Positions 24,233-60,087 of a DNA stretch of 64,000 nt are shown piece by piece. Where the stretch lies: the IMG/VR virus record IMGVR_UViG_3300023049_000005, positions 124,001 through 188,000 of that record. The stretch is one strand, 5' to 3'. The translations under genes were made by a program, and so were the position numbers. The notes under the pieces were generated by a model that was not told the origin of the DNA, did no database searches, and was given only the letters and a program-made list of their open reading frames with translations. How positions within the stretch are numbered: the first letter of the stretch is position 1; each line of letters begins with the position of its first letter.

Positions 24233-24595
24233 ATGGATTCTGATATAGAACAAGTAGTAAATTCAATTGATAGTGATAGATCATTGTTATCGGGTAATGA
24301 TTATAAGTATATTAGTTATAAAGATAAAGAGTATTTATATAAAGTAACTGATGAATGCACATTATTATATGGTGAAACAATTATTTGTGATCCTAATACC
24401 CCAATATATACAACCAAAAAAAGATTATTTGGTTTGGGTAAGAGTAGTAAGACAATAGAGTATAAAACACTTTTTGTCATAGATAAGAATATAGAAAATC
24501 CCGAATACTCTAAATCAGATATCAAAAAACTCTTTAAAAGAGCTTATGATACATATCAAAGAGAATTAGAAATAAGAAAAGGAGAATTATTATGA
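24233..24595 (+). CDS. Hypothetical protein
   Basis: 120-aa ORF. Confidence 0.7.
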   Translation: MDSDIEQVVNSIDSDRSLLSGNDYKYISYKDKEYLYKVTDECTLLYGETIICDPNTPIYTTKKRLFGLGKSSKTIEYKTLFVIDKNIENPEYSKSDIKKLFKRAYDTYQRELEIRKGELL

Positions 24596-25017
24596 AAGAA
24601 GCAATAAAAAAAGAAATGATTTCTGCTATGAAATCTAAGAATAAAGAAAGATTAAGTGTGATAAGACTTATCAACGGTAAGATTACTGACGCATTGAAGG
24701 AAGACGAAAATACTAACCTAGTATCTGTATTGGATAGTATGGTTAAGGAAAGAAATAAGTCTATCGAATCATATTTAGAGGGTGGTGCAGAAGAACTTGC
24801 TAAACAAGAAGAATATGAGATTACAGTAATCAATGAGTTCTTACCTCAAAGAATGGATATTCTAGAAATAGAAAAGGAAGCCGAAGAAGTTATTAAACAA
24901 ACAGGTGCTAGTTCTATGAGAGATATGGGTAAAGTAATGGGTATCCTAAAAGGTAAATTAGGGGATACTGCTACACCAAGTGATATTGCTACTGCGGTTA
25001 AATCAAAATTGTCTTAA
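24592..25017 (+). CDS. yqeY: GatB/YqeY domain protein
   Basis: 'AMKSKNKERLSVIR...KERNKSIESY...ELAKQE..EI.VI..FLPQ...GASSMRDMGKVMG'. Confidence 0.9.
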   Translation: MKEAIKKEMISAMKSKNKERLSVIRLINGKITDALKEDENTNLVSVLDSMVKERNKSIESYLEGGAEELAKQEEYEITVINEFLPQRMDILEIEKEAEEVIKQTGASSMRDMGKVMGILKGKLGDTATPSDIATAVKSKLS

Positions 25018-25256
25018 TGGATAACTTTGATTATAATGATAAAGGGTTTATAGACTACATAAATGAAGATAAACTCGTATTTTTATCTCGTATTATTAAA
25101 TTGGATTTAACTAGTTTTGTAGATATTTGTGTAGCAGATACTCATGATAATAAACAATTCGCTATTAATATTAGGTATATAAACAATTTGAAAGAAAAAT
25201 ATAAAGCAACTAAAAGAGATGGTTTAATAAACCATGTTCTAGATGATACTATATGA
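25017..25256 (+). CDS. Hypothetical protein with C-terminal RDGLINHVLD motif
   Basis: 79-aa ORF. Confidence 0.7.
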   Translation: MDNFDYNDKGFIDYINEDKLVFLSRIIKLDLTSFVDICVADTHDNKQFAINIRYINNLKEKYKATKRDGLINHVLDDTI

Positions 25257-25479
25257 AGATTTAGAAAAATATTATAATAAACCTAATGATTGGATTCCTG
25301 CTAAACAAGCTTTTTTTGGTCGCCATAAAAGGATACCTAGAAAGTTAAAAAAGAAAGGTAGAAGGTGTCAAGAGAAACACCCGTATTTAGAAATAAATCA
25401 ATGTTTATAGTATCTCTTACAGAAACAAGATCCTAATTATGCTAGGTATTTAATAAAATTAGTAATTAAATCAGATTAA
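25243..25479 (+). pseudogene. Small phage protein (RIPRKLKK motif) interrupted by an in-frame TAG
   Basis: ATG 25243; TAG at 25408-25410 in 'INQCL*YLLQKQDPNYARYLIK'; frame continues to TAA 25479. Confidence 0.55.
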
Positions 25480-25541
25480 AATGATACGTAATAATAAATT
25501 AATAGCATTAGAAAATAACATATTAAAAGAAGTTAGATAAG

Positions 25542-25730
25542 ATGGCAAAAGTTATACGAATTGACGAAACTAAAGCAAATCAAAGAACACATTCAGATTG
25601 CGGTGCTGTAATAGAATATTTCCCAAATGAAGTGGAAAGTATAGTAGAGAATGAACCATATGGCGGTGGAACAGATACATATCATTATCTGACTTGTCCC
25701 AATTGTGGTAAAAAAATGAGGTGGTGTTAA
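25542..25730 (+). CDS. Small zinc-ribbon protein
   Basis: HxxC...CPNC. Confidence 0.7.
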   Translation: MAKVIRIDETKANQRTHSDCGAVIEYFPNEVESIVENEPYGGGTDTYHYLTCPNCGKKMRWC

Positions 25731-28897: not shown

Positions 28898-29938
28898 ATG
28901 AAAGATTATTACAATATATTAGGTGTCAGTAAAGACGTATCTGATGCAGAATTAAAGAAAGTATATAGAAAGTTATCTAAGAAGTATCACCCTGATATTT
29001 CAAAAGAAGCTAATGCTGAAGATAAATTCAAAGAAGTATCTGAGGCATATGAAGTACTTTCTGATTCTCAGAAAAGACAAAAATATGATAGAGGTGGATC
29101 TAATGATCCATTCGGAGGCTTTGGTGGCTTCGGTGGAGATCCATTCGGAGATATGTTTGGTGACTTCTTCGGTAACAAGAGAGCATCTAGAACAAGGGAT
29201 AATACTAATTTAGATATTGTTTTGGATGTGGATCTTACTTTAGATGAAGTAGAACTAGGTGGCACTAAGAAGATTAGATACAAAAGAACTATGAATTGCC
29301 AAACTTGTAAGGGAGAAGGTGGTGATGGTTCTTCTACTTGTAGCTCTTGTAATGGAAGAGGAAGAAGGGTAGAAAGGGTTCAAACACCCATGGGGATATT
29401 ACAGACAGAAACCATATGTCCTAATTGTGGCGGTTCGGGTCAAACTATTGCTAATACCTGTAATAGCTGTCATGGAAAAAGCAGAGAAGAAAAATTCGAA
29501 GAAACGGTTGTTAACTTTGGTAAAGGTGTTTCAGAATCCATGAAGTATAAATATAACGGTAAAGGACATCAGAGAAAAGGAAGAAAGGGAGATTTGTATA
29601 TTCGTTTTGTTATCAGGAATCATCCTATATTTAAAAGAAACGACACAACTCTCATACAAGAAGTAACTGTTCCTTTTAATGTCCTAATGTTAGGTGGTGA
29701 AATTACTGTATCAGGGTTAAATGGGAAAAGTTATAAGTTGAATGTTCCTAAACTTTCTAGAACGGGAGCATCGTTAAGACTTAAAGATAAAGGATTACCT
29801 TATTCGGAAGGACAATTAAGAGGCGATATGATCGTAGTATTGAATATAGATTTACCTAAAGAGCTAACAGAAGAAGAAATTGGTATAATCGAGCAACTGA
29901 ACGAAAAGGATAATTTTATATATAATATTAAAAAGTAA
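28898..29938 (+). CDS. dnaJ: Chaperone DnaJ (full length)
   Basis: J-domain HPD, G/F region, four CxxCxGxG-type repeats, C-terminal domain. Confidence 0.95.
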   Translation: MKDYYNILGVSKDVSDAELKKVYRKLSKKYHPDISKEANAEDKFKEVSEAYEVLSDSQKRQKYDRGGSNDPFGGFGGFGGDPFGDMFGDFFGNKRASRTRDNTNLDIVLDVDLTLDEVELGGTKKIRYKRTMNCQTCKGEGGDGSSTCSSCNGRGRRVERVQTPMGILQTETICPNCGGSGQTIANTCNSCHGKSREEKFEETVVNFGKGVSESMKYKYNGKGHQRKGRKGDLYIRFVIRNHPIFKRNDTTLIQEVTVPFNVLMLGGEITVSGLNGKSYKLNVPKLSRTGASLRLKDKGLPYSEGQLRGDMIVVLNIDLPKELTEEEIGIIEQLNEKDNFIYNIKK

Positions 29939-29944
29939 ACAATT

Positions 29945-30148
29945 ATGTTAAATATAAAAGTAGATGATAAGGGCAGTAAGAACGCTATAGAGAAAGCCTT
30001 AAAGCAATATAAGAATAAGGTAAGAGATACTAAAATGATGGATAAACTTAGAGAAAAGAAAGAATACAAAAAGAAATCTGTTAAAAGAAGAGAAGAAATC
30101 AATAAAGCAGTATACGTAGAGAAAAAATTTAAATCTAATGATCAGTAA
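29945..30148 (+). CDS. rpsU: 30S ribosomal protein bS21
   Basis: 'IEKALKQYKNKV......LREKKEYKKKSVKRR' S21 signature. Confidence 0.85.
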   Translation: MLNIKVDDKGSKNAIEKALKQYKNKVRDTKMMDKLREKKEYKKKSVKRREEINKAVYVEKKFKSNDQ

Positions 30149-32280: not shown

Positions 32281-32652
32281 ATGATATTTGTTTTTAAATC
32301 AGACACAAAAATGGTTAACCACCCAAGACAGGTAGAAGATAGAGAAGTCGAACTTCTAATCCATTTTGAAACAGGTGCGGAATATCTTTCATATATGAAA
32401 GAAAATTTTAATATAGCGGAAGACTTTACAGTACCCGATATAGGTATATGTGGTATGCAGATACAAGATGCTGAGAATGGGATATTAAAGGATAAAAATG
32501 GTGATTATCCCGAAGACGCTATAGTAGTAAACACTGAATTTGAGATAAGAAGGGAAGATCCTATATATGATAGTTTCTATAAACCATTCGTAGATTATAT
32601 TACTATATACAACAGAGATAAATCAATAGACAATTTATTAGACAATGACTAA
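32281..32652 (+). CDS. Hypothetical protein with C-terminal RDKSIDNLLD motif
   Basis: 123-aa ORF. Confidence 0.7.
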   Translation: MIFVFKSDTKMVNHPRQVEDREVELLIHFETGAEYLSYMKENFNIAEDFTVPDIGICGMQIQDAENGILKDKNGDYPEDAIVVNTEFEIRREDPIYDSFYKPFVDYITIYNRDKSIDNLLDND

Positions 32653-33346
32653 CAAAATAGAATTCCAAGTGTTTGGATCTAGTTCATCACAGGATCTAGA
32701 TTGTATGTGTTTCGTTGAACGCATCCCTTCTATTAAAGAGTCACATGAACTGTGTGAAAGATATGCTGAATATATCCAAGAAGTAACACAAACAGATAAA
32801 GAAATCAACACTAATATCTGTGTGGTGAAGGATAGAAGGGTAGTAGATACGTTTAAGGGAACTGCTGATGAAGTAAATAACTCCTTATATTTAACTAGAG
32901 ATCTTCATAGACAATATAATAGAAGTCCTATTGAGCGTTTAGTTGAAAGAGATGTAGAGCTTAAGATATTAAGAACAGCAAGAGTTCTTTTGTCTTTTTG
33001 GTCAAGATCAAAACATCGCCCTCTTGTTAAGAAAGCATTGAAGGGCGATATTTATGAAAAGATAGAAGCTATATCATCTATTGATATTACTGAGATAGAT
33101 TTCAATAAAAATATTAATCAGAAGGACTATCTTAAAACATTAGCTTTTCAACTAGGTCAAACAATCGGTCTAATAGAAGGAAAGGCATTCTATACTAAAG
33201 AAGGAATGTTGTCTCGCTTTTATGATCTTGAAAAATATTTAATGAGGGAAGAAGTAAATAGTTTATCTATTTTAGAGAATTATAAAAAAGAATTTATATC
33301 ATTGATAAAGGATAGAGATTTTAAAATCACAAGAGAACCAACATAA
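32645..33346 (+). CDS. Pol-beta superfamily nucleotidyltransferase-like protein
   Basis: N-terminal hGS..DxD motif 'VFGSSSSQDLD'. Confidence 0.5.
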   Translation: MTNKIEFQVFGSSSSQDLDCMCFVERIPSIKESHELCERYAEYIQEVTQTDKEINTNICVVKDRRVVDTFKGTADEVNNSLYLTRDLHRQYNRSPIERLVERDVELKILRTARVLLSFWSRSKHRPLVKKALKGDIYEKIEAISSIDITEIDFNKNINQKDYLKTLAFQLGQTIGLIEGKAFYTKEGMLSRFYDLEKYLMREEVNSLSILENYKKEFISLIKDRDFKITREPT

Positions 33347-33823: not shown

Positions 33824-33880
33824 ATGAAAACCTTAAACATAAGTACATTATTAAATAATTTATTATTACTTTTACGGTGA
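33824..33880 (+). CDS. Leu(UUA)-rich attenuator leader peptide MKTLNISTLLNNLLLLLR
   Basis: 18 codons, 8 Leu of which 7 are TTA; immediately followed by an antiterminator/terminator and tRNA-Leu(TAA). Confidence 0.8.
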   Translation: MKTLNISTLLNNLLLLLR

Positions 33881-33881
33881 T

Positions 33882-33946
33882 AAGAATTAGGATATGCACT
33901 TATGTGAAAACTAAACCTAATTCTTTAAAACGATTAGGTTTTTTTT
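33882..33946 (+). promoter_or_regulatory. Transcription attenuator (antiterminator/terminator) of tRNA-Leu(UAA)
   Basis: aagaattagg 33882-33891 is the perfect complement of cctaattctt 33916-33925, which overlaps the terminator 5' arm aaacctaatt 33913-33922 (3' arm gattaggttt 33932-33941, T8 run). Confidence 0.8.
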
Positions 33947-33958
33947 GTGTCTAAAAAT

Positions 33959-34043
33959 GGCTGAGTGGTGGAATTGGTAGACACGTTGGACTTAAAATCC
34001 AATGGGCATTGCGCCCGTGCGGGTTCGACTCCCGCCTCAGCTA
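33959..34043 (+). tRNA. tRNA-Leu (TAA)
   Basis: GGCTGAG/CTCAGCT acceptor, TTGGA-CT TAA AA-TCCAA, long variable arm, GGTTCGA T-loop; no encoded CCA. Confidence 0.95.
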
Positions 34044-34048
34044 CAAAT

Positions 34049-34095: not shown

Positions 34096-34800
34096 ATGAA
34101 ACTAGTTAATAAAAATTACGAATTTGAAGATTTTTTAGCTATCGGTTATGATACAGTAGCTAACTGTAACCACGAGTGTGAGGAGTATGGTATATGTAGA
34201 TGTACTATTAAAAATAATGTTTGTTTTGATAAGTTTAATGATCTAGAATTAAAGGATCACATATTAGATTTATTATGTAAAGATCTTTCTAAAGAAGAGA
34301 AGAGAAATGTTTTTATTGATGATTTACTATGTAATGGAGTTAGTCAGATAAGAGAGTATTTTATCGATAGAGTATTGAAGATAAACAATTGTTATGATCC
34401 TGAAAATTGGGAGATAGAAGTTAGTGGGGGCTATTATGGAGAAGAAATTCATGGTGTTTATTTAAGTATATTAGATAGAGTAAATAGTGATTTAGGACAA
34501 TATACAGGAGATATTAATAAAGATATACCTTTCTTATTGGAGAGAGAGTATGGTGGGCTAAATCATAGGTTAGTAGGAAAAAAATGGAAGGAAGGTATTG
34601 TTAAAATGGATGATATAATTTTTCCACAAACCCAACATTATAATAAAGTAGATGGTAATCTTTATTATTATAAAGATGAATATTACCCATTCCCAAGAGG
34701 TGTGGTTTTGCAAGATGAAAAAAAATATAAAGTGATCGATGGGTATCACAGATTAAAAAATACAAACCAATCCAATGTAATTGTGTATATTTGTTATTAA
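34096..34800 (+). CDS. Protein with C-terminal ParB/Srx-like motif
   Basis: 'YKVIDGYHRL'; N-terminal Cys cluster. Confidence 0.55.
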   Translation: MKLVNKNYEFEDFLAIGYDTVANCNHECEEYGICRCTIKNNVCFDKFNDLELKDHILDLLCKDLSKEEKRNVFIDDLLCNGVSQIREYFIDRVLKINNCYDPENWEIEVSGGYYGEEIHGVYLSILDRVNSDLGQYTGDINKDIPFLLEREYGGLNHRLVGKKWKEGIVKMDDIIFPQTQHYNKVDGNLYYYKDEYYPFPRGVVLQDEKKYKVIDGYHRLKNTNQSNVIVYICY

Positions 34801-34801: not shown

Positions 34802-34990
34802 ATGAAATTTGAATTAGATAAACATCAGTTAAAAGAAATTGATCAATGGAAACAAAAGATCAAAGAGAAACACGGTAAATATGGTCATTTCGATTATATT
34901 TTTACACCCTTTGGTGCAGGAACAGGTGTTAAAATTTATAGCCACTTAGAGAAAGAATATCTAGATGTAAGTGATACACAAGATTGGTAA
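34802..34990 (+). CDS. Hypothetical small protein
   Basis: MKFELD...YIFTPFGAG...LDVSDTQDW. Confidence 0.65.
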   Translation: MKFELDKHQLKEIDQWKQKIKEKHGKYGHFDYIFTPFGAGTGVKIYSHLEKEYLDVSDTQDW

Positions 34991-34991
34991 T

Positions 34992-36275
34992 ATGTATAAA
35001 GGCGAAGATAAATATATTTTGGTAATGTTGCCCTATCCTAGTGGTAGTGGATTACATGTTGGTCATTCCTATTGTTATGCTTTAATGGATAGTTACTGCA
35101 GATGGAAAAGGTATATGGGGGAATCTGTGTTCCAACCATTTGGTTATGATAGTTTTGGGTTGCCTGCTGAATTATATGCTGACAAAGTAGGTAGAGATCC
35201 AAAAGAAGTCACACAAGAAAACATAGAGAACTTTAGGAAACAGATGGATCATATGAATACCATGTTTGAGGAAAAATTGATCACATCCGATCCTTCTTAT
35301 CAAAAATGGAGTCAGTTCATATTCGATGTCATGAAAAAAAGTGGATTGGCTTATAAAAAATTTGGGGAAACTAGTTATTGTCCAAGTTGTAAAACTACAT
35401 TGGCGAATGCTCAAATAATAGATGATTATTGTGAACGTTGTTCCTCTAAAATAGAACAGACTGAATCAGAACAATGGTACTTTAAAATCACTGATTATAT
35501 CGATAGATTGGAAAAGAACTTAGATGAAATTGATTACCCATCTAAGACCATTAAGCAACAAAGACATTGGTTGCAGAATATGAGAGAGAATAATATCGAT
35601 TGGTGTGTTTCTAGACAAAGGAAATGGGGCTGTCCTATTCCGATTGAGGGGGAAGAAGATACCTTGGATACATTTGTTGATAGTAGTTTCTACTTCATTA
35701 GATATTGTGATCCTGATAATACAGAAGAAATTTGTAGTAAAGAAAACTTTAAACAAGTTGATTTATGTATAGGTGGTAACGAACATGCTTGCGCACATTT
35801 GGTATATGCTAGATTCATGATGATGGTATTATATGATAATGGTTATGTACCTGTTGAAGAACCCTTTAAGAAAGTTGTCCATAATGGGATGATTACTAAG
35901 GATGGTTATAAGATGTCTAAATCTAAAGGTAATGTTGTTGATCCAAATGATTATGACCCAAATGAATTGAGAATGTACTTGATGTTTATCGGTCCTTACA
36001 CACAGGGTGGTGATTGGGAAGATAGCAAGATCAAAGGCATCAGAAGGTTTATTGGTAGATGGGATAGATGGATGGAAACTGCCGAAGAAAACGGAGAAGG
36101 ATTAAATGATATTAATGAATTGGAAGAAACTATTGATGATTATATGAATAGTTGGAAATTCAATAAAGTTATTTCCTCATTGATGGAATACTATAATAAG
36201 AACAAGAACAATACTATTAGTACTGATAGTAAAGAGAAGTTGAATAAGATATATAATTGTTTTAAAACAAAGTAA
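34992..36275 (+). CDS. leuS: Minimal leucyl-tRNA synthetase (no CP1 editing domain)
   Basis: MLPYPSGSGLHVGH (HIGH), GYDSFGLPAE, Zn knuckle, QWYFKITDY, DWCVSRQRKWGCPIP, DTLDTFVDSS, GGNEHA..HL.YARF, KMSKS; about 427 aa from ATG 34992. Confidence 0.9.
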   Translation: MYKGEDKYILVMLPYPSGSGLHVGHSYCYALMDSYCRWKRYMGESVFQPFGYDSFGLPAELYADKVGRDPKEVTQENIENFRKQMDHMNTMFEEKLITSDPSYQKWSQFIFDVMKKSGLAYKKFGETSYCPSCKTTLANAQIIDDYCERCSSKIEQTESEQWYFKITDYIDRLEKNLDEIDYPSKTIKQQRHWLQNMRENNIDWCVSRQRKWGCPIPIEGEEDTLDTFVDSSFYFIRYCDPDNTEEICSKENFKQVDLCIGGNEHACAHLVYARFMMMVLYDNGYVPVEEPFKKVVHNGMITKDGYKMSKSKGNVVDPNDYDPNELRMYLMFIGPYTQGGDWEDSKIKGIRRFIGRWDRWMETAEENGEGLNDINELEETIDDYMNSWKFNKVISSLMEYYNKNKNNTISTDSKEKLNKIYNCFKTK

Positions 36276-37939: not shown

Positions 37940-37963
37940 ATTAAATAAACTTTATTATATTTG
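37934..37963 (+). promoter_or_regulatory. Bacteroidota sigma70-type promoter for the tRNA cluster leader
   Basis: TTG (37934-36), 19-nt spacer, TATATTTG (37956-63). Confidence 0.65.
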
Positions 37964-38010
37964 CAAACTATAAGACAAAAAGGAACATAAAAACTTTTAT
38001 ATATACTGAA

Positions 38011-50000: not shown

Positions 50001-52905
50001 AGATTTAAAACTTGACGACACACAATTAGATGATGGAGTTACTGGTACAGATTCTTTCTGGTCATCAGTTAAGATTACTACTGAGTTAGATACTAAACTT
50101 GATGATAATCAGTTAAATGATAGTGCTACAAATTCAACAACTTCATTATGGAGTGCTGATAAAATTTATACAGAACTAGATTTAAAACTTGATGATAGTC
50201 AGTTAAATGATGGTGCAACCAGTTCTACAACATCAATGTGGAGTGCTAATAAGATACAGTTTGAACTAGACAGTTTGAGTTTTAGTAGTGTAGTTATAAA
50301 TGATTCAGTTACAGCAACAGATTCTGTATGGTCTTCTGATAAAATAGATACAGAACTAGATACTAAACTTGATGATACTCAGATTAATGATTCTGCTACA
50401 AATGTAAATATTTTATGGTCTTCTGATAAAATAGATACCGAGTTAGACCTTAAACTTGATGATACTCAATTAAATGACGGTGTTACAGGGACAGACTCTT
50501 TCTGGTCTTCTGTTAAGATTACTTCTGAATTAGACTCTAAACTAGATGATAGTCAATTAAATGATAGTGCTACAAATTCTTTAACATCAATGTGGAGTGC
50601 TGATAAAATTTATACTGAATTACAAGCTATTGAAGCTAATGATCTACAAATAATCGACAGTGTTACTAGCTCTACTACATCAGTATGGAGTGGTAATAAA
50701 GTTTATACAGAATTAGAATTAAAACTAGATGATAGTCAACTAAATGATAGTATAACTACATCTACTAACTTATGGAGTGCAGATAAAATACAAACAGAGA
50801 TAAACGATTCTAGTTTTTATTTAAATAATGGTACATTATCTACTAATAGAACAATTGATGCTAATGAATCGACATTAACATTGGAGAGAGGTCAATTTGA
50901 AATAACATCAGGAGCTGATACTGTAGATTATGGTTTAATAGTTAGACGAGATGTAGGATTGACAGCGTATGCTAAATTAGTCTTTGATGAGTTAAATGAC
51001 ACTGCTATATTAGATGTAGCAAGTCCAACTGGTAGTTTTTTCTCAGCGAGTAATGGTATAGTAAGCGTAAATGGAGAGTTTAGGATTTTAGACGATGATC
51101 AATCTAATTATTTAAGGTTCTCAGCAGGATCACTAACACAGAGTTTAATATATGCTTTCCCACCTAATTATGGTACAAATGGAGAAGTATTAATAACAAA
51201 TGGTTTAGGTGATCTATCATGGACTGCTTCTAGTGGGGGTGGTATATCATCATTAACTGAAAATACTATATTAATAGGTAATACTGTTAATGAACCACAA
51301 GAAAGAGTTGTAGAAAAAATTTATGTCGATAACTTATCTACTGAATTCTTATCTACCGAATACTTATATACGAATCACTATACTACTTCTATTTCACAAA
51401 AAATAGAATCTAAATATCAGGTTGCAGAAAGAACACAACAAGATTGGATGATTTCTAAAAAGAACCATAATCAAGATATAATATTTGATATAGATATATC
51501 CAATACTAATATTTACTCAACTAGTAGCCAAGCATTAGATATAGAAAATTATTTGGGTGCTGACGTATTAAATATAATTGATAGTTCTACGACTTCTTCT
51601 ATCGGTGTTACAATATCATCTATTATAGGTGTGTTAAATGATTATAGATTTGCTTTAAGATTAGACGGAGAAGGCACAATAAACTTTGATGATGTAGCAG
51701 CAGCGTCTGCTTCGGTTAACAGTATAGTACTAATAGGAACACAGAGCCAAATATTGACAGGTGGAACATACTCAGCAGATATAAAATTCAGAAGAGTTAA
51801 TGGAGTTAACGTACAAATTGATCCACAAGTGAGTGTTGTATCAGTAGGTACTAGTGGTGGTGGAGGTTCTAATATTAATGATGCTGTTACTGCAACAGAA
51901 TCTACATGGTCTTCTACTAAAATATCCTCTGAGATTACTAGTGGTAATACAAATATATACACTGCTGACGGGACATTAACATCAGATAGAACGATATCAG
52001 GGGGAGCTAATGCTATAATTTTAGCTAATGGTGATTTTAATATACAACCATCGGGTGTAACTAATATTGGGTTTGGAATAAAAAACGTATCTGCTAATAC
52101 TTTAGCTGAGTTCATATTTGATTCGTCAAATGGTGGAGCAAAATTAGATTTGAAAAATTCATCACTAGATAGTTACTTCTCAGCAGATAATGGTGTAGTT
52201 AGTGTTGCGGCAGCAGCAGAATTTAGAATATTTGATGATAATAATTCACATTATTTAAGACTATCGGCAGGATCATTAACAGCAAATAGAACTTACGTTT
52301 TTCCATCAGATTATGGGACAGCAGGGGGAATAATGACATCAGATGGTGCAGGTAATTTATCTTGGTCAGTTGTTGGTGCAGGAATCGATTCATCAGGAGG
52401 TACTGTGTCACTTGAATCAGATCAAAGAGGAAACATATTCCAAATAGGAAGGGATACTAATGACTATATCTTGGTTAATACCACTGTTATCGATTTCAGA
52501 TTAGATGGTAACTTAGATATGAGGTTAGAAAATGATGGTGATCTTCATGTTGATGGTGATGTATTTGCTTTCTCTACTACAACATCTGATGAAAGCCTTA
52601 AAGATAATATCGAAACAATCGAAAGTGCATCAGAAAAAATATCAAAACTTCGTGGTGTAGAATTTATTTGGAATGGTACATCAAGAAAAGGACAGAAGGA
52701 TATTGGTCTTATAGCACAGGAAGTTGAAAAAGTTATACCTGAAGTAGTTTATGATAAAACTTTAACTACAGGAGAATACGCAGATAATCCTAAAGATGTT
52801 AAGACAGTAGATTATGCAAAACTTGTTGCTCTGCTTATTGAATCTAATAAAGAACTACAAAACAGAGTTTCTGATTTAGAAGAAGAAATAAAAAAGAAAA
52901 AATAA
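41059..52905 (+). CDS. Giant repeat-rich tail fibre with C-terminal peptidase S74 (intramolecular chaperone) domain
   Basis: 3948 aa; dozens of (I/L)ND....T..(L/G)WS..KI..E repeats; C-term SDESLKDNI...KLRGVEF.W...GLIAQEVEKVIPEVV...VDYAKLVALLIE. Confidence 0.8.
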   Translation: MTQSGMIKGKQINIESINLIPNESPLALTSFTVSTASTTFSGKQIINLEYLNDQLDLKIDITQINDNATSSTSSLWSADKIYTEITGLSQSIDSVSISISNILNDFITGSTTGWSSEKIDEELITLENSVNIKIDSVSISVANLLNDSITGSTTGWSSEKINNELDLKLDDSQLNDAAATSSTTSLWSVNKIYTELQAIEANDLQINDNATSSTTSLWSANKIYTEIQGLSSSVDARIDIINISVSNIEGDIIGLSNSIDSLSVSVADNTANIDSVSISVANILNDGITGSTTGWSSEKINNELDLKLDDSQLNDSIIGTLSLWSSDKISSEIQGLSSSVNTRIDTVSASVIGLSQSVDSLSQSVATNTTNIDSVSISVANLLNDSITGSITGWSSEKIDEELITLENNINSQLDLKLDDSQLNDTIVGTDSLWSSDKIDSEIQGLSSSVNTRIDTVSASVIGLSQSVDSISISVTNNTSTITGLSQSIDVINVTISNIEGDITGLSQSIDSVSISVANLLNDSITGSTTGWSSEKIDEELITLENNINSQLDLKLDVSQLNDAAATSSTTSLWSVNKIYTELQAIEANDLQINDAVTATDSVWSSNKIDNELDLKVDKTQIDDGGTGTTSLWSVDRLLTEFELKLDVSQLNDSIISATGLWSSDKISSEIQGLSSSVNTRIDTVSASVIGLSQSVDSLSQSVATNTTNIDSVSISVANILNDSVTGSTTGWSSNKIDSELDFKLDDTQLNDVVIGTNSLWSSDKINSEVQGLSSSVYAEIDSVSISVANLLNDSITGSTTGWTSQKIDSELDLKLDVSQLNDAAATSSTTSLWSVNKIYNELQAIDADHLQINDNATSSTTSVWSGNKVYTEIQGLSSSVYAEIDSVSISVSNLLNDNITGSTTGWSSEKIDEELITLENNINIKIDSVSISVANLLNDSITGSTTGWSSEKINSELDLKLDDSQLNDVAATSSTTSLWSVNKIYTELQAIDADHLQINDNVTSSTTSVWSGNKVYTEIQGLSSSVNTRIDTVSASVIGLSQSVDSLSVSVFNNTTTITGLSQSIDSVSISVANLLNDSITGSTTGWSSQKINDELDLKLDDSQLNDSAATSSTTSLWSVNKIYNELELKLDDSQINDAATSSTTSLWSSDKLYTEFENKLDTSLTNSYIFLGSPQNVATPTETEKIYISSVSDVPLTEEYLFLNGNTVTLAQKIESNFQIAERTQQGWMVSKRNVNEEVIFDIDVSSASLFNTASNELDISNYTGVDSLNIIDSTTSSPISITISSISGLESGYNINLRLEGQGSITFENTSATAASVGDLILFNDENRTIVGGTYSQGINIKNKNGVNLEIDPQFDIIIDQVNSNINDSTTSSTTSVWSANKIYTELRAIDADHLQINDNATSSTTSVWSGNKVYTEIQGLSQSIDSVSISVANILNDSITGSTTGWSSQKINNELDLKLDDTQLNDSIIGTDSLWSSDKINSEVQGLSSSVNSRIDTVSASVIDNTNTIIGLSSSVDSLSLSVFNNTTDITGLSNSIDIINVTISNIEGDIIGLSNSIDSVSISVSNLLNDSITGSTTGWTSQKINNELDLKLDDSQLNDAAATSSTTSLWSVNKIYTELQAIDANDLQINDNITATDSVWSSNKIDSEIQGLSSSVNTRIDTVSASVIGLSQSVDSLSVSVFNNTTDITGLSQSIDSVSISVANILNDGITGSTTGWSSNKIDSELDLKLDVSQLNDSIIGTLSLWSSDKTNTEIQGLSSSVNTRIDTVSASVIGLSQSVDSLSQSVATNTTNIDSVSISVANILNDSITGSTTGWSSEKIDNELDLKLDDSQLNDAAATSSTTSLWSVNKIYTELQTIDADHLQINDNATSSTTSVWSGNKVYTEIQGLSSSVYAEIDSVSISVSNLLNDSIIGSTTGWTSQKISDELDLKLDDTQINDTATSSTTSLWSSDKLYTEFQGKLGTGLTESYIFLGSVGNIATETPTEKIYPINDNDVLLTESYLAQFRSDLSIGQKVETVNQIAEKTPNGWSIIKKNINEDLIYDIDISNSSNYTISSNELNISDYLGVDTLNIIDGSTSSPFSITVSTIAGLYADFKIRFTVDTGGEVTFEHTDLATASFDDIVLSSGVNKTITGSTYSDYLSIQKIDIINKETDLSSDSITSNITNNISNSINDGTTSSTTSLWSANKIYTELQAIDADHLQIIDSVTSSTTSVWSGNKVYTEIQGLSSSIFAEIDSVSISVSNLLNDSITGSTTGWTSQKISNELDLKLDDTQINDTATSSTTSLWSSNKLYTEFENKLDTGLTESYIFLGNTANESSRVPTSKLYIDNVSTDILTETYVSNNYSTASIGQKVEASDQIAEKTQTDWMISKKNHNQDIVKDLDISSASLFATSSNQMNITQFIGVDTINIIDSSTSSFSATISTIFGLFDRSSVKFKVTTGGSVTFEHTDIASASFYDISLLSGGNVTIIGSTYSEFLRLQKINNINIEEDNVSLGVGSVTINDSSTSSTTETWSADKIYTEITGISASLSSEINDSITATDSTWSSDKIQTEIDDSSLYTSNGTISSPRTIYGNETQLILDGGQFEIWEGIDTTEYGVILRESGGGIRGQFVYDALSNTTKLELLNGTSSFFLANGGTVSVKGAFTIDDDDNSHYLQFSAGSLTQSLTYVFPSDYGTDGQALITDGSGTLDWITVATNSLSINDSSTNSTTEVWSADKTYTEIQGLSSSVFGEIDSVSISVSNLLNDSITGSTTGWTSQKINNELDLKLDDTQLNDAAATSSTTSLWSVNKIYTELELKLDDSQLNDAVTATDSVWSSNKIDNELDLKVDKTQIDDGGTGTTSLWSVDRLLTEFELKLDVSQLNDSIISATGLWSSDKIDNELDLKLDDTQLNDAAATSSTTSLWSVNKIYTELDLKLDDSQLNDTITTTNSLWSSDKIDTELDLKLDDTQINDSATNVNILWSSDKIDTELDLKLDDTQLDDGVTGTDSFWSSVKITTELDTKLDDNQLNDSATNSTTSLWSADKIYTELDLKLDDSQLNDGATSSTTSMWSANKIQFELDSLSFSSVVINDSVTATDSVWSSDKIDTELDTKLDDTQINDSATNVNILWSSDKIDTELDLKLDDTQLNDGVTGTDSFWSSVKITSELDSKLDDSQLNDSATNSLTSMWSADKIYTELQAIEANDLQIIDSVTSSTTSVWSGNKVYTELELKLDDSQLNDSITTSTNLWSADKIQTEINDSSFYLNNGTLSTNRTIDANESTLTLERGQFEITSGADTVDYGLIVRRDVGLTAYAKLVFDELNDTAILDVASPTGSFFSASNGIVSVNGEFRILDDDQSNYLRFSAGSLTQSLIYAFPPNYGTNGEVLITNGLGDLSWTASSGGGISSLTENTILIGNTVNEPQERVVEKIYVDNLSTEFLSTEYLYTNHYTTSISQKIESKYQVAERTQQDWMISKKNHNQDIIFDIDISNTNIYSTSSQALDIENYLGADVLNIIDSSTTSSIGVTISSIIGVLNDYRFALRLDGEGTINFDDVAAASASVNSIVLIGTQSQILTGGTYSADIKFRRVNGVNVQIDPQVSVVSVGTSGGGGSNINDAVTATESTWSSTKISSEITSGNTNIYTADGTLTSDRTISGGANAIILANGDFNIQPSGVTNIGFGIKNVSANTLAEFIFDSSNGGAKLDLKNSSLDSYFSADNGVVSVAAAAEFRIFDDNNSHYLRLSAGSLTANRTYVFPSDYGTAGGIMTSDGAGNLSWSVVGAGIDSSGGTVSLESDQRGNIFQIGRDTNDYILVNTTVIDFRLDGNLDMRLENDGDLHVDGDVFAFSTTTSDESLKDNIETIESASEKISKLRGVEFIWNGTSRKGQKDIGLIAQEVEKVIPEVVYDKTLTTGEYADNPKDVKTVDYAKLVALLIESNKELQNRVSDLEEEIKKKK

Positions 52906-56765: not shown

Positions 56766-57605
56766 ATGAATTCTTGTCATATATTTAACATAGATAACAC
56801 GTTGATCGATTTCGATAGACAAGTTTGGGTTATAGAAAAAAGTAATCCTAATAAGTGTATTATGAAAATTGATAAGTCAGAGTTTGACCTTATTAAGAAT
56901 GGGGTATACAAAAACTTTGGTATTTCAATAAATTTTGGTAGTAAGAAGTACTTTGTAGATGATACGTTCATACAAAAACTAAATGATAGTGTTAAAAAAG
57001 AAGTTGAAATAAATGAATTAACATTCAGTTTCAGAGAATATATTGAACCCGAATCTATTGATGGTTTGGATATAAGATATGATTTAGCACCTATTAAACA
57101 CCTTAAATCGAGCAATGATGATATCTATTTCATCACTTCTAAAACAACCGAAGAAAACTATAAGAATATCCATAATAAACTTATCGAAAAACTAAAAGAT
57201 AATGGTATTATCATAAAACAAACATACTATCTTAATAGCTCATATTTTGCCCAAAGTAGCGACGAAAACCTTAAAAAGATATCACATGTAATTATATCTA
57301 ATTTACTTGGTAGAAACATAAGAAATAATGAATTAATGGATACTAATGATAGAGAATATAGCTCTGTTAACTATTATGATTCAAACTATGTTACGATTAA
57401 TAAATTGAAAGCACAGATTAAAGAATTCTTAGATGGGTTAACAACTAAGGATGTTAAGAAAAAACTTTTTTTGAATAAAGTTACTTCCAATGAATTAAAT
57501 ATTATCGAAAAAGAAGAAGTTGAATTAAATGATAAATATATTAGAACATTTGAATCATTTAGTCGTCATCACGATTCTTTAAAAAGTCGTCGATTTTCGA
57601 ATTAA
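56766..57605 (+). CDS. Hypothetical protein (degenerate HAD-like N-terminus)
   Basis: 'HIFNIDNTLID' resembles the HAD DxD motif with N replacing D. Confidence 0.5.
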   Translation: MNSCHIFNIDNTLIDFDRQVWVIEKSNPNKCIMKIDKSEFDLIKNGVYKNFGISINFGSKKYFVDDTFIQKLNDSVKKEVEINELTFSFREYIEPESIDGLDIRYDLAPIKHLKSSNDDIYFITSKTTEENYKNIHNKLIEKLKDNGIIIKQTYYLNSSYFAQSSDENLKKISHVIISNLLGRNIRNNELMDTNDREYSSVNYYDSNYVTINKLKAQIKEFLDGLTTKDVKKKLFLNKVTSNELNIIEKEEVELNDKYIRTFESFSRHHDSLKSRRFSN

Positions 57606-58173
57606 TATCACTTCCATTTAATATTATACCATCACTACCATTATTAGGGCTAACATTATAATCGCCACTGTTTACAGTTTCGTTTAATCCAAGATCTTTT
57701 CTCATATCTTTATACATCTTTTCTATCTCAGTTCTTGCTTTACGACCATCTTTGATATTTTCTCTAACCTCACCAATATGCTTAGATGTGATCTCGTACA
57801 TTCTTGGACTTATATCACCTGAATCAATTTGCTTCATTTGTTGTAATAGAAGCTTCTCACTGAGTTTTTGTATTACTTTCATCTGTGAATAGTATTCAGC
57901 GTCTTCACTCATCCTAGCTTGGATATACTCGTGTTCAGCTACATCAGAATCACCTAAATATAGGTCTACTAAACCCTTTAATAGCTCTTTACCTGTTTCT
58001 TTAGCCTTATTAATATCTTTATCGTAGTCGTATAGTTCTACTTCACCGAAACCTGGCATGTCTTCGTCAGAGTCTACCATATATTTACTCATATCAGCTT
58101 GGTTTGAGTATTGGTTCTTTATTTGTTCTATTTCGTCGTCTAGATCCTTCTTTTTATCTTGATTCTTGCTCAT
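57559..58173 (-). CDS. Putative terminase small subunit (T4 gp16-like)
   Basis: 'SPRMYEI' helix motif followed by coiled coil, like the gp16 xPRxxEV motif. Confidence 0.5.
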   Translation of the reverse strand: MSKNQDKKKDLDDEIEQIKNQYSNQADMSKYMVDSDEDMPGFGEVELYDYDKDINKAKETGKELLKGLVDLYLGDSDVAEHEYIQARMSEDAEYYSQMKVIQKLSEKLLLQQMKQIDSGDISPRMYEITSKHIGEVRENIKDGRKARTEIEKMYKDMRKDLGLNETVNSGDYNVSPNNGSDGIILNGSDINSKIDDFLKNRDDD

Positions 58174-58251
58174 AAGGATGTTTATATTTTAACTTATATA
58201 TAAATAAATAGTTCTTTCATTTTAATATATAAATAAAATACAAATAGTACT

Positions 58252-58509
58252 ATGGATGTTCAGAAATTTAATGATTTTAAAAAAGAAGGTGGTAAGAGCA
58301 ATTATATGTTCTTCAACCATTTGAGAGTGATGAAAAACAATATTGAAGAACTAATGGGAATGGATCAAGATAAAATTGATGCTATATTAGATGAACACGA
58401 TTGGGCTTCTGACCACATATCTGTCGCATCAGAGAACTTAGACCAAGTATATCACTTCCTATTATCAGGGAAGATTAAAGATCAAGAAGAAGGCTCAGAA
58501 GAAGTGTAA
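58252..58509 (+). CDS. Hypothetical protein
   Basis: 85 aa, 'HDWASDHIS'. Confidence 0.7.
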   Translation: MDVQKFNDFKKEGGKSNYMFFNHLRVMKNNIEELMGMDQDKIDAILDEHDWASDHISVASENLDQVYHFLLSGKIKDQEEGSEEV

Positions 58510-58898
58510 TCTACATCAGCTTCTTTTAACCACATATCTAAATTATTAGCTAAATTATCAATAGTTGTTTCTACATATAGATTATAAAATTCTGTGCTTA
58601 GATCTTCATCAAAACAAGAAGGACATTTGTAGTCATAATCCGCAGCATAGGATTGACTCACCATTAGATTAAAGTCCTTATCATAAACATATACCACAGT
58701 AGTATCGAAAGAAATACCGTAGGAAACATCATTCCTACGGTATAATCGATCAGTGTCATTATAATCAGGTCTATGTACGTCTGCGTTTTCAACGTACCCA
58801 CAACCTAACTTATCGAATTTAGAGAAGATATTGGCTTCTATCCAATTGATCTTTTCCATATAATTAAACACATCTTCTCTTTTATTAACTATATTCAT
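58482..58898 (-). CDS. Hypothetical protein
   Basis: 138-aa ORF. Confidence 0.6.
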   Translation of the reverse strand: MNIVNKREDVFNYMEKINWIEANIFSKFDKLGCGYVENADVHRPDYNDTDRLYRRNDVSYGISFDTTVVYVYDKDFNLMVSQSYAADYDYKCPSCFDEDLSTEFYNLYVETTIDNLANNLDMWLKEADVDYTSSEPSS

Positions 58899-60087
58899 AC
58901 TTCTCGTAATTATATCCTCTCTTATCTAACCACTTTCTAGCGATTTCTAAATAATTTGTTTGTTTAGAAATCACATCTATAGCAGAATCAAAAGGATCTC
59001 TGTTATAGTTATACTTCGCCATAACAGCAGGGAAATACATGTTCTTATGATACTTTAATGCAAAAGACTTAACATCCCCCATTTCTAGAATATTATATAA
59101 ACTGTTGGTGTTATTAACGATTTCATTTAACTCAGTTCTTACTATATTTAAGATAGTGTTTATTCTATCAATAGTAATAGTTTCGTCCTTAGGTATCTCT
59201 CCTAACAAATCATCGATAGTACCATCAAGAATATACTTAATGATCATATTCTCACGTCTGATTTCATCTGTTAATAAACCATGACGAGATCTATACCATT
59301 CGTTCTTTATTTTGTAGAAGAAGTCATGTCCATTATCATCAATAGCATGGATAACATATCCCTCTTTGTTTTCGTCTGTTTCATTGATTTCTAACAAACG
59401 ATCCAAAGATTCGATATCTTCGAAATTGGCATACTCGATATTATTTTCATTTAGGATATCTAAATAATCATGTATATCTAAATACTTACCTGTCTTATTA
59501 TCCCTTAATTTCAATAAGATAAGTTTCTCTTCTTTATAGTTCAAAACTATCCTATTCCTTGGGGAAACATATTCAAATACTGCTACAATATTATTGTCTA
59601 AACAATAGTCAACAAAGTTTCTTACGCCTTCGTTTTTTTCATATAGTTTAGTAGTACCAATAGCCTGTGGGGAATCAAATCCCATCTTGGATTTCCCAAT
59701 TACTTTACCATTAGGTAGTCTAATAAAAGATGCTACAGAACCATCCTCTTTATTGTTGATGTATTTTATTTTGAGATGCTTTACATTTTCATATAAAGAT
59801 TCAGTAGTTTGGTTCAAGTTAAAGAATTTCTCTAACAATAAAAATCTATTATATAAAGTACCATCTTTATTGAAAACAAAACACAACCCTCTTAACTCTC
59901 TAGCATCATGACCTTCTATTCCCAAAGGGTTAAGAAAGTCCATATACTGAGCTAAACGATAATTGAATAAAGAAACGTTATAACCTTCGATCACATATTT
60001 ATTTTCATAAAATGTATTCTTTTCAAAGCTATTACATATCTTCACACATTCATCGTAAGATGGTAAATATGTTCTGTGAGTTTTCAT
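58885..60087 (-). CDS. RNA ligase 1 (T4 Rnl1/RnlA family)
   Basis: 'RELRGLCF', 'EKFFNLN', motif I KEDGS, FEYVSP.NRIV, EGYV, YKIKNEWY. Confidence 0.9.
   Translation of the reverse strand: MKTHRTYLPSYDECVKICNSFEKNTFYENKYVIEGYNVSLFNYRLAQYMDFLNPLGIEGHDARELRGLCFVFNKDGTLYNRFLLLEKFFNLNQTTESLYENVKHLKIKYINNKEDGSVASFIRLPNGKVIGKSKMGFDSPQAIGTTKLYEKNEGVRNFVDYCLDNNIVAVFEYVSPRNRIVLNYKEEKLILLKLRDNKTGKYLDIHDYLDILNENNIEYANFEDIESLDRLLEINETDENKEGYVIHAIDDNGHDFFYKIKNEWYRSRHGLLTDEIRRENMIIKYILDGTIDDLLGEIPKDETITIDRINTILNIVRTELNEIVNNTNSLYNILEMGDVKSFALKYHKNMYFPAVMAKYNYNRDPFDSAIDVISKQTNYLEIARKWLDKRGYNYEKYEYS

Follow-up and report, generated by a model that had tools for sequence, protein, structure and literature searches.

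The 64,000-nucleotide stretch of DNA analysed here (the window) corresponds to positions 124,001 to 188,000 of IMG/VR record IMGVR_UViG_3300023049_000005 and belongs to a ~271-kb phage from lake water (genome G000, 89% complete). All seven elements listed in the original prediction were found at or near the expected positions, and its observation therefore holds. The region recurs almost letter for letter in contigs from three further lake-water samples, so it is not an assembly artefact. YqeY (24592-25017, + strand, 141 aa), a GatB/YqeY-type domain protein, matches PF09424 at 111 bits over the full profile. Ribosomal protein bS21 (29945-30148, +, 67 aa) matches PF01165 at 31-32 bits, which is above the cut-off, and lies directly after DnaJ (28898-29938). 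The DnaJ-bS21 pair is conserved in L155 and L156 (L numbers denote related loci) and in another contig.

The tRNA-Leu(UAA) gene (33959-34044, +; ARAGORN and Rfam, 61 bits) is preceded by a leader ORF of 18 codons (33824-33880, +) in which eight codons specify Leu and seven of those are TTA, the codon read by the tRNA downstream (enrichment p 3e-5). This leader is conserved, with synonymous changes, in L156. It is followed by an antiterminator (33882-33948, + for the whole switch) in which residues 33882-33891 pair with 33916-25, and this pairing is mutually exclusive with an intrinsic terminator formed by 33913-33941 plus a U run. Folding of the strand showed that the antiterminator is the minimum-energy fold (-13.2 kcal/mol) when the upstream arm is free, whereas the terminator alone is -8.4 kcal/mol. 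The Leu unit thus folds as a two-state switch. The upstream arm starts one base after the stop codon of the leader.

A second and larger unit begins with a leader ORF of 33 codons (38011-38112, +) that is rich in Asn, Leu, Ile, Thr, Cys, Val and Met (24 of 32 residues; p 2e-5), the amino acids of the tRNAs in the array behind it. The switch (38086-38174, +) consists of an antiterminator arm (38086-38092) inside the 3' end of the leader and an intrinsic terminator (38138-38166 plus a U run; -14.6 kcal/mol, z -4.0). For this array and for the unit in L033, the terminator is much more stable than the antiterminator, and read-through there would have to be kinetic. A homologous leader was observed in L155 at 2385-2495, where the upstream arm and both terminator arms change together. 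The array itself (38181-39551, +; ARAGORN and Rfam) holds at least 13 tRNAs, in the order Asn-like, Asn, Leu(UAG), long-arm Asn, Leu(CAA), probable long-arm Ile, Ile, long-arm Thr, Val, Thr, long-arm Val, Met and long-arm Cys, together with two unassigned structured gaps. A further tRNA with a CAU anticodon (39930-40004, +; Rfam, 77 bits) resembles bacterial tRNA-Ile2, which would need the TilS of the host; the Ile2 assignment is our inference. None of the 20 tRNA genes of the genome encodes CCA, as each has N73, then C, then A or T.

Three such leader-controlled units were found in G000 and many more in other huge-phage contigs. As an example, a unit in LR745206.1 sits before Pro/Asp/Gln tRNAs. 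Across 123 arrays with a candidate ORF, 13 matched their tRNAs at p<1e-3 against 1.4 in permutations, with a maximum of 6 in 200. The organization resembles the leader-peptide transcription attenuation of amino-acid operons (trp, his, leu, thr, pheA) and of pheST in enterobacteria, where a short ORF rich in regulatory codons is followed by mutually exclusive antiterminator and terminator hairpins and a U run. Here, however, the regulated genes are the tRNAs themselves, so that the sensor and the product are the same molecule, one leader mixes codons for up to seven amino acids, no clear 1:2 pause hairpin was seen and the system is phage-encoded. Leader-peptide control of phage tRNA arrays was not found in any of the papers that could be searched, and these attenuator-gated arrays look new.

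The 270-nt RNase P RNA (40730-41000, +) scores only 38.6 bits with the Rfam RNaseP_arch model against a gathering score of 84 (Rfam E about 1e-7 to 1e-10). A covariance model (R1) built from 20 other phage contigs, and without this sequence, scores it at 174.6 bits (E 2e-38). It keeps the catalytic core, with P1-P4 including the bulged U in P4, CR-I and CR-IV/V, while the specificity domain is reduced to one stem. In the family, covariation was observed in P3, P4, a P5/7-like stem and a P18-like hairpin, and it appears in helices that were not used for selection; genome G010 also shows compensatory changes. A full P4 was found in 42 of 118 motif matches against 0.65 in shuffles. The RNA lacks the domain that recognizes the tRNA elbow and no RnpA was found in the genome. 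It may be inactive alone or act as something else. Like bacterial type A RNase P RNA and its naturally reduced forms (Pyrobaculum type T, Mycoplasma), it has P1-P4, the bulged U in P4, GAGGAA (CR-I), the AGAUAAAUGA and ACAGAA motifs (CR-IV/V) and an invariant GGU at the place of the L15 loop. The family differs in being 150-310 nt long, in replacing the specificity domain with one stem of variable length, in being phage-encoded, usually inside tRNA arrays, and in having no cognate RnpA gene. Of 38 family members, 21 lie within 1 kb of tRNA genes on the same strand. A mini RNase P RNA was not found described for phages in the papers that could be searched, and the family looks new.

The mini-LeuRS (34971-36275, +, 434 aa; Pfam tRNA-synt_1/1g) is a catalytic core with HVGH and KMSKS that lacks the CP1 editing domain. 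Its best solved relative is the naturally CP1-less Mycoplasma mobile LeuRS (PDB 3ZIU, 265 bits), in which the HIGH and KMSKS motifs are likewise kept. The phage protein is about 200 residues shorter, the alignment ends near residue 518 of 637, and the C-terminal tRNA-binding region is missing. It is a member of a large, conserved phage or metagenomic family of 410-440 aa, with hundreds of members at 60-65% identity.

The T4-type RNA ligase 1 (58885-60087, - strand, 400 aa) matches PF09511 at 86 bits and T4 Rnl1 structures at 109 bits, and the motif I lysine (KEDGS) is kept, although the C-terminal domain reaches only 21 bits against a cut-off of 27. In phage T4, Rnl1 acts together with Pnkp to repair tRNA against the PrrC anticodon nuclease. 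G000 likewise encodes a P-loop AAA_33 kinase, but this kinase is stand-alone and about 17 kb from the ligase, no Pnkp phosphatase domain was found, an extra Pol-beta nucleotidyltransferase family is present, and the host and its defences are unknown.

ORF 32645-33346 (+) gave no Pfam, PHROG or PDB sequence hit. About 60 homologues were found, all from metagenomes or huge phages, and G11, S12, D17 and D19 are near-invariant in the family. A structure search with the AlphaFold model (pLDDT 95), a check named in the original prediction, placed it closest to Pol-beta-type nucleotidyltransferases, namely HalB (Z 7.8), ANT(3'')(9) (Z 7.7), AAD(9) (Z 7.3) and, for residues 1-102, MNT, and the model has a helical C-terminal domain. 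In related loci the family is operonic with Rnl1 and an AAA_33-HD end-healing enzyme (L020, L013), with RlaP (L023, L029) or with a Thg1-like enzyme (L018). RNA-end repair is therefore supported, whereas CCA addition by this protein is not, and the protein belongs to a new RNA-ligase-associated family. RlaP, also a Pol-beta-fold nucleotidyltransferase, adds one or two nucleotides to damaged RNA 3' ends (PMC7824862, PMC12776372), but the protein studied here has no PF10127 match, and its family occurs side by side with true RlaP in L023 and L029, so it is distinct and probably not redundant.

The original prediction had proposed that Pnkp, a CCA-adding enzyme, TilS and RnpA be sought in the rest of the genome. 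Of these, only the CCA-adding enzyme was found, a canonical class II enzyme (PF01743) at 251 kb of G000, 67 kb outside the window, whereas Pnkp phosphatase, TilS and RnpA were not found and only the stand-alone AAA_33 kinase was detected. No 2',3'-cyclic phosphodiesterase or 3'-phosphatase, RlaP, HD, Thg1 or cREC was found in G000 either, and the repair pathway is therefore incomplete as annotated; the genome is 89% complete. Absence of co-occurrence across related phages had been set beforehand as grounds for rejecting the integrated reading. In nine near-complete related genomes, Rnl1 was present in 8, the CCA-adding enzyme in 7 (where it co-occurs with the nucleotidyltransferase family), YqeY in 6 and the RNase P RNA in 1. 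The RNase P RNA occurs in 5 of 29 related records. No control set of huge phages lacking the nucleotidyltransferase was included, and the co-occurrence may only reflect genome size. The genes are scattered among unrelated genes, including a 12-kb tail-fibre gene, and no conserved synteny was observed across 30 related loci.

We consider it somewhat more likely than not that the phage carries several separable modules that all act on tRNA. In this view, each tRNA transcription unit starts with a short leader ORF whose codons are the ones read by the tRNAs behind it, followed by an antiterminator/terminator switch. When those tRNAs are scarce or uncharged, the ribosome stalls in the leader, the antiterminator arm stays free and transcription runs on into the tRNA genes, whereas when supply is good the ribosome reaches the stop codon and covers that arm so that the terminator forms. 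The RNase P RNA would then process the transcripts, presumably with the RnpA of the host or an unidentified phage protein, the CCA-adding enzyme would complete the CCA-less 3' ends, and the mini-LeuRS, and perhaps YqeY, would act in charging. Rnl1, the AAA_33 5'-kinase and the nucleotidyltransferase would form an RNA break-repair set, while bS21 would bias ribosomes, as already proposed for other phages. The modules would converge on keeping the heavily used A/U-rich-codon tRNAs of the phage available, but they are inherited and arranged independently and not as one system. The presence of the elements, their family membership, the structure covariation, the codon matching and the gene neighbourhoods in relatives are shown, while every activity and the stalling mechanism are inferred; nothing has been shown experimentally, there are no transcript or activity data, and no RNA run holds this sequence. 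The host is probably a Bacteroidota bacterium, an inference based on TAnnTTTG-type promoter boxes, bS21 and a Flavobacteriales-labelled homologue.

A less likely but possible alternative is that this is an ordinary huge-phage collection of translation helpers, kept because an AT-rich phage needs more of certain tRNAs or shuts down the host, where nearness in the window only reflects the usual grouping of accessory genes and parts such as the RNase P RNA and the mini-LeuRS may be relics or have other roles, such as titrating host RnpA. Huge-phage translation and RNA-repair gene sets are already published, and tRNAs, aaRS, a CCA-adding enzyme and bS21 are found in phages of more than 200 kb (Al-Shayeb et al. 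2020, PMC7162821), although that paper does not mention RNase P. The independent distributions also favour this reading, and the tRNAs read A/U-rich codons that dominate the usage of the phage (AAA, AAT, TTA, ATT, TTT, ACA and GTA). Against our own explanation, the tRNA set omits Asp, Glu and Tyr readers although GAT, GAA and TAT are among the top codons, and it includes rare Cys. Against the present alternative, the mini-LeuRS and the mini RNase P RNA are under clear purifying selection, as judged from the family sizes and identities of the former and the compensatory changes of the latter, so they are not relics. The codon matching between leaders and tRNAs shows purpose-built regulation, and Rnl1 together with a repair-type nucleotidyltransferase implies that RNA breakage matters.

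It is also unlikely, though not excluded, that the 32645-33346 protein does not act on RNA and is instead a small-molecule or signalling nucleotidyltransferase, for example one carrying out HalB-like oligonucleotide synthesis to silence a Hailong-type defence, or adenylylation of a small molecule or protein as ANT or MNT enzymes do. None of its best fold matches is a tRNA enzyme, all score Z < 8, and in the window the gene is not next to any repair gene. Against this stand the recurrent, overlapping-ORF operons with Rnl1, kinase-HD, RlaP and Thg1-like genes in five independent loci and the many invariant Arg and Lys residues in the helical domain.

The interpretation given in the original prediction, one integrated counter-measure against host tRNA-depletion defences with the nucleotidyltransferase as a speculative candidate for 3'-end addition or repair, is only partly supported: the parts do cover successive steps of tRNA supply, and its guess that this protein works on RNA ends gains real support from relatives. 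The integrated reading, with the nucleotidyltransferase rebuilding CCA ends, is the least likely of those considered. In its favour, phage tRNAs and Rnl1/Pnkp are known to defeat anticodon nucleases (PMC10264068, PMC11555353, PMC11464382), the nucleotidyltransferase family is operonic with repair enzymes in relatives, all phage tRNAs lack CCA and 7 of about 10 tRNA-related loci of the genome fall within 13% of its length. Against it, a canonical CCA-adding enzyme is present and co-occurs with the nucleotidyltransferase family, the nucleotidyltransferase has no PolyA_pol head domain, synteny and a Pnkp phosphatase are lacking, the RNase P RNA is sparsely distributed and nothing links bS21, YqeY or LeuRS to defence. 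Whether the purpose is counter-defence rather than meeting codon demand or surviving host shut-off was not tested here. The neighbourhoods of the mini RNase P RNA provide two further observations. In another huge phage (genome G003), a YqeY gene starts 40 nt after this RNA. In addition, a 234-aa protein is encoded between tRNA-Leu(UAA) and the mini-LeuRS (34096-34800, +; pLDDT 87.5), with an unknown N-terminal domain and a predicted C-terminal ParB/sulfiredoxin-fold domain that carries an invariant DGYHR motif and matches sulfiredoxin 6KY4 (Z 8.2, rmsd 1.9). Its homologues lie directly downstream of the mini RNase P RNA in L140, L070 and L038 and elsewhere in a cREC ... AAA_33 kinase cluster, which makes it a lead for a tRNA/RNase-P-linked factor.

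The window (G000:C1:124001-188000) belongs to a 270,756-bp IMG/VR virus record, here called G000, which is 29.8% G+C and is rated 89% complete by CheckV. Positions without a prefix refer to the window, while G and L handles denote virus records and individual loci respectively. Near-identical contigs were found in four lake-water metagenomes, but only as DNA, and none of the RNA runs was found to hold the sequence. We infer, without having tested it, that the host belongs to the Bacteroidota. The inference rests on the presence of bS21, on a Flavobacteriales-labelled homologue of the mini-LeuRS and on TAnnTTTG-type boxes, which correspond to the -7 element of the Bacteroidota sigma-A promoter. 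These boxes are seen upstream of several small genes and stand at fixed distances upstream of the leader ORFs described below and of single tRNAs (37950-37975, 39575-39590 and 39905-39920; about 1483-1492 in locus L035; 2322-2332 in the related contig L155; 13797-13806 in L033 of phage LR745206.1). In the phage contig G010, such a box lies about 7 nt before the first base of the RNase P RNA. Their placement suggests use of the host RNA polymerase.

The observation on which the original prediction was built held, as each of the elements it listed was found to be present. YqeY (24592-25017) matches PF09424 at 111 bits over profile positions 1-143, and bS21 (29945-30148) matches PF01165 at 31.4-32.1 bits against a cut-off of 27. 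The bS21 gene forms a conserved pair with DnaJ (28898-30148 for the pair), which recurs in L155 (17128-19019) and in one further related contig. GrpE lies next to the pair in two relatives, and in L155 a full EF-G gene lies between the tRNA array and the mini-LeuRS. The tRNA genes (33959-34044, 38181-39551 and 39930-40004) were identified with ARAGORN and Rfam, and a second array (Lys/Phe) is located at G000 73275-73762. None of the 20 tRNA genes of G000 encodes CCA, and in all of them the discriminator base is followed by C and then by A or T. The invariant C74 may matter for 3' processing or for the CCA-adding enzyme.

The mini-LeuRS (34971-36275, 434 aa) has a class I catalytic core with the HVGH and KMSKS motifs, and its top 17 PDB hits are all LeuRS. 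Its best solved relative is the naturally CP1-less LeuRS of Mycoplasma mobile (3ZIU). The two aligned pieces skip the CP1 editing domain and the protein stops near residue 518 of the 637-aa chain; the CP1 domain, a complete anticodon-binding domain and the C-terminal domain are lacking. A search for related loci in IMG/VR returned nothing, but a protein search and the contigs encoding its hits showed that the mini-LeuRS belongs to a very large family of 410-440-aa proteins at 60-65% identity, many of which come from contigs of 200-490 kb. A 309-aa ORF with HNH/NUMOD1 endonuclease signatures (36277-37206) starts 2 nt after the mini-LeuRS stop codon and is conserved in L156, a 95%-related contig. 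It is probably a homing endonuclease, and further HNH genes occur elsewhere in the genome (L036 2515-2988).

Rnl1 (58885-60087) matches PF09511 at 86 bits and T4 Rnl1 at 109 bits, and it retains the motif I lysine within the KEDGS motif. Its C-terminal tRNA-specificity domain scores 21 bits against PF20819, below the cut-off of 27, which leaves the presence of this domain undecided. The ORFs neighbouring Rnl1 (58482-58898, 60109-60840 and 57559-58173) gave no lead in Pfam, PHROGs or the Atlas, and no Pnkp-like partner could be named among them.

The tRNA genes are preceded by short leader ORFs that resemble those of transcription attenuators. In the Leu unit, an 18-codon ORF (33824-33880) sits before tRNA-Leu(UAA) and contains 8 Leu codons, where 7 of the 17 codons after the start are TTA. 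A 10-nt segment (33882-33891) that begins one base after its stop codon pairs with the 5' arm of an intrinsic terminator. With that segment free, the antiterminator is the minimum-energy fold (-13.2 kcal/mol), whereas without it the terminator forms (-8.4 kcal/mol). The large array is preceded by a 33-codon ORF (38011-38112) where 24 of the 32 residues after Met are Asn, Leu, Ile, Thr, Cys, Val or Met, which is exactly the set of tRNAs behind it. The 3' end of this ORF contains a 7-nt segment complementary to the 5' arm of the terminator. In both units a terminator lies between the leader and the tRNA genes, with an overlapping antiterminator placed where a ribosome at the stop codon would mask it. 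The Lys/Phe array has a Lys/Phe-rich leader built in the same way.

Related phages support this arrangement. L156 keeps the Leu leader through synonymous changes, and the 76%-related L155 has a homologous array leader (2385-2495) whose antiterminator segment and both terminator arms have changed together. The same logic was observed in the 634-kb phage LR745206.1, where a leader with a Pro/Gln/Asp run (L033 13864-13959) precedes Pro, Asp and Gln tRNAs. Over all the loci examined, 123 tRNA arrays have a candidate upstream ORF and 13 of these match their tRNAs at p<1e-3, against a mean of 1.4 and a maximum of 6 in 200 permutations of tRNA sets among arrays. The mechanism, in which stalling of the ribosome keeps the antiterminator free, is inferred by analogy with the trp, his and pheST attenuators, and read-through under shortage of the cognate charged tRNA was not measured. 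No paper describing leader-peptide control of phage tRNA genes was found in the literature searched, which was not complete. In L156 (8270-9050) the leader and attenuator are conserved but the tRNA-Leu(UAA) gene is interrupted in the anticodon loop by an insert of about 720 nt that carries a 155-aa HNH endonuclease ORF. The insert looks like a group I intron with a homing endonuclease, and the copy in the window is uninterrupted.

The RNase P RNA (40730-41000) scores only 38.6 bits with Rfam (40734-40995), against a gathering score of 84, although the E-value is 1e-7 to 1e-10 and the alignment covers the whole model (positions 1-288). The sequence itself shows the hallmark of this RNA, GAGGAA (CR-I) followed by an 8-bp P4 helix with a single bulged U, which forms between 40772-80 and 40977-84 with the bases just after ACAGAA (CR-V). 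The CR-I, CR-IV and CR-V motifs occur in order, enclosed by P1-P3, and are seen as invariant columns in the family alignments. The specificity domain (P7-P14) that reads the tRNA T/D-loop elbow is reduced to one stem, as only one stem with a variable tip lies between the P4 5' strand and the P15-like region. Cleavage of pre-tRNA 5' leaders was not assayed, and no RnpA gene (PF00825) was found in the genome. A 187-nt relative in G010 has the same P4 helix with compensatory changes.

A scan of IMG/VR for the CR-IV/CR-V motif gave more than 117 stretches, while a more specific DNA pattern found only G010. Of the 118 matches examined, 42 have the full P4 with the bulged U, retained through many compensatory variants, against 0.65 in shuffles. 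These RNAs are 150-310 nt long. A MAFFT alignment of the first two RNAs misplaced the 5' half, but RNAalifold on 33 family members recovered P3, P4, a P5/7-like stem and a P18-like hairpin with compensatory changes that played no part in the selection. A covariance model built from 20 members without the window's copy scores the window at 174.6 bits (E 2e-38), though E-values from this model are rough by design. Across 29 related records it found 5 RNase P RNAs, whereas the Rfam model found only 2. Of 38 family members, 15 lie within 100 nt of a tRNA gene and 21 within 1 kb, nearly always on the same strand. No paper on a phage-encoded RNase P RNA was found in the incomplete literature searched. 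In the 508-kb phage G003 (G003:C1:385499-386091), the RNA ends 40 nt before a YqeY gene. We considered YqeY as a fixed partner of the RNA but did not adopt this view, as it rests on a single adjacency and YqeY is common in records without the RNA. An ARAGORN tmRNA prediction at G000 105540-105913 was also considered and dropped, as its tag is implausible and it was not supported elsewhere.

The ORF at 32645-33346 gave no match in Pfam, PHROGs or a PDB sequence search, but it has about 60 homologues, all from metagenomes or huge phages, and only the fold and the gene context were informative. A structure search had been proposed for this ORF beforehand, and the predicted model (pLDDT 95.3) is a minimal Pol-beta nucleotidyltransferase domain plus a helical, HEPN-like domain. 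The closest matches are HalB, ANT(3'')(9) and AAD(9) at Z 7.3-7.8, with Foldseek probability up to 0.97. These scores are moderate, but all top rows agree. Residues G11, S12, D17 and D19 (the GS...DxD motif) are near-invariant. The original prediction had offered this protein as a speculative candidate for 3'-end addition or repair. It is unlikely to be the CCA adder because it lacks a PolyA_pol head domain match (PF01743) and the genome has a canonical class II enzyme with PolyA_pol head and RNA-binding domains at G000 250940-252106. That enzyme accompanies the family in 7 of 9 near-complete relatives.

The family was observed in RNA-repair operons elsewhere, although the gene is not in such a neighbourhood in the window itself. 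In L020, the order is Rnl1, the nucleotidyltransferase and an AAA_33 kinase fused to an HD phosphoesterase, in overlapping ORFs. In L013, Rnl1 is followed by another Pol-beta protein, the nucleotidyltransferase and a kinase-HD protein, whereas in L018 the nucleotidyltransferase is followed by a Thg1-like and an RlaP-like gene. In L023, RlaP precedes the nucleotidyltransferase, with Rnl1 about 1.6 kb downstream, and in L029 one ORF separates RlaP from the nucleotidyltransferase. These operons surfaced only after a scan for PF10127. BLAST clustering of the neighbourhoods of 30 nucleotidyltransferase loci showed no conserved synteny. The arrangement matches the published idea of RlaP, an RNA-ligase-associating Pol-beta enzyme that adds one or two nucleotides to damaged RNA ends (PMC7824862 section 3.4.9; PMC12776372). 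The present family gets no PF10127 match and stands beside true RlaP genes, and therefore we treat it as a distinct family.

The original prediction read these genes as one integrated counter-measure to host tRNA-depletion defences, an interpretation that is only partly supported. Of the partners whose presence elsewhere in the genome it had set as a test, the CCA-adding enzyme was found but RnpA, TilS and a PNK3P phosphatase were not. The bifunctional 5'-kinase/3'-phosphatase partner of a T4-type Rnl1 and Pnkp pathway was not found, and only a stand-alone AAA_33/KTI12-type kinase of 166 aa was found at G000 200 kb. Searches of G000 also returned no HD, RlaP, Thg1 or cREC, where Thg1 was sought by tblastn with the Thg1-like protein of L018. 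Failure of the genes to co-occur across related phages had been named as grounds for rejection. Among nine near-complete genomes that carry the nucleotidyltransferase, Rnl1 was observed in 8, the CCA enzyme in 7, YqeY in 6 and the RNase P RNA in 1 (5 of 29 records overall). There was no control set of huge phages lacking the nucleotidyltransferase, and these rates may only reflect genome size. Close relatives keep the linkage of LeuRS with bS21-DnaJ, with rearrangements, but synteny around the nucleotidyltransferase is not conserved. In the window the parts are separated by unrelated genes, including a 3948-aa ORF (41059-52905) that ends in a Peptidase_S74 intramolecular chaperone domain, i.e. 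a giant tail fibre or spike, and is followed by a lectin-like (Laminin_G_3) 308-aa protein. We conclude that the parts are separable modules acting on one substrate class and not a single co-inherited system.

Both defence and demand might explain the presence of these modules. The phage tRNAs read A/U-rich codons that the phage uses heavily (AAA, AAT, TTA, ATT, TTT, ACA and GTA), but the set lacks Asp, Glu and Tyr readers although GAT, GAA and TAT are top codons, and it includes rare Cys. The repair genes imply that RNA breakage matters, and phage tRNAs are known to defeat tRNA-cleaving defences (PMC10264068, PMC11555353, PMC11464382). The sequence does not separate the two causes, and the attenuators would respond to shortage from either. 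All functions discussed here are inferred, and there are no expression data.

Sets of translation and RNA-repair genes in huge phages are already described, and as a list the present genes are a variant of such sets. Three aspects would matter if confirmed. First, tRNA genes governed by ribosome-mediated attenuation tuned to their own codons would form a simple feedback loop, a new regulatory circuit that appears common in these phages and is open to direct testing. Second, a phage-borne RNase P RNA family of only 150-310 nt would be among the smallest natural RNase P RNAs and offers a natural experiment on what the specificity domain and the protein subunit are needed for. Third, a second RNA-ligase-associated nucleotidyltransferase family beside RlaP would widen the known set of RNA-repair enzymes. 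Together these make the long-standing question of why phages carry tRNAs, for supply or for evasion of defence, testable, as the leader sequences state which tRNAs the phage itself monitors.

A more far-reaching reading, which we offer only tentatively, is that huge phages of Bacteroidota-type hosts run a self-contained tRNA homeostat. In this view, tRNA arrays are transcribed only when a leader peptide, written in the very codons those tRNAs read, stalls the ribosome, and the transcripts are then cut by a phage-encoded, domain-stripped RNase P ribozyme that sits inside the arrays. The ribozyme may use a new protein partner in place of RnpA or its lost specificity domain, where the candidates are YqeY and the 234-aa protein at 34096-34800. 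Complexes were not modelled and we do not claim that any protein pair binds. The long-arm tRNAs described below would be substrates tuned to this machinery, or made invisible to host nucleases.

The 234-aa protein lies between tRNA-Leu and LeuRS and belongs to an uncharacterised family with an unknown N-terminal domain, which has a conserved Cys cluster, and a C-terminal domain of predicted ParB/sulfiredoxin fold (Z 8.2) with an invariant DGYHR motif. Homologues were found at L140 1976-2605, L070 930-1511, L038 2960-3532 and L162-L164. The family is encoded directly downstream of the mini RNase P RNA in three other phage loci. In three others, it lies in a cluster that runs from cREC through one gene, this gene and a 620-aa protein to an AAA_33 kinase.

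Furthermore, several tRNAs were observed to have long variable arms but anticodons of normally short-arm families (Asn, Thr, Val, Cys, Lys, Ile and Gly; the Ile case of the window is only probable). They are located at 38434-38521, 38784-38869, 39140-39224, 39465-39551 and probably 38609-38698, at G000 73357-73445, and in L003 (16472-16652), L155 (2890-3154) and L010 (8231-8320). Most sit next to an ordinary tRNA with the same anticodon. They share a 3-bp D stem and a D loop that resemble those of tRNA-Ser, their stems covary and their discriminator bases mostly fit the cognate amino acid. They might be charged cognately or with Ser or Leu, or might serve as nuclease-proof or decoy tRNAs.

In addition, two stretches inside the tRNA array (38952-39057 and 39225-39377) were not assigned by any tool, including the intron and tmRNA modes of ARAGORN. 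The second ends in a tRNA-like T arm and forms an 8-bp acceptor-like pairing with its own 5' end, with about 70 extra nt in between. A third Asn(GUU)-like tRNA (38181-38252) was found by Rfam (46.8 bits) but not by ARAGORN. It has an unusual T loop, and lake samples X2-X4 carry A>G at position 38198 inside it.
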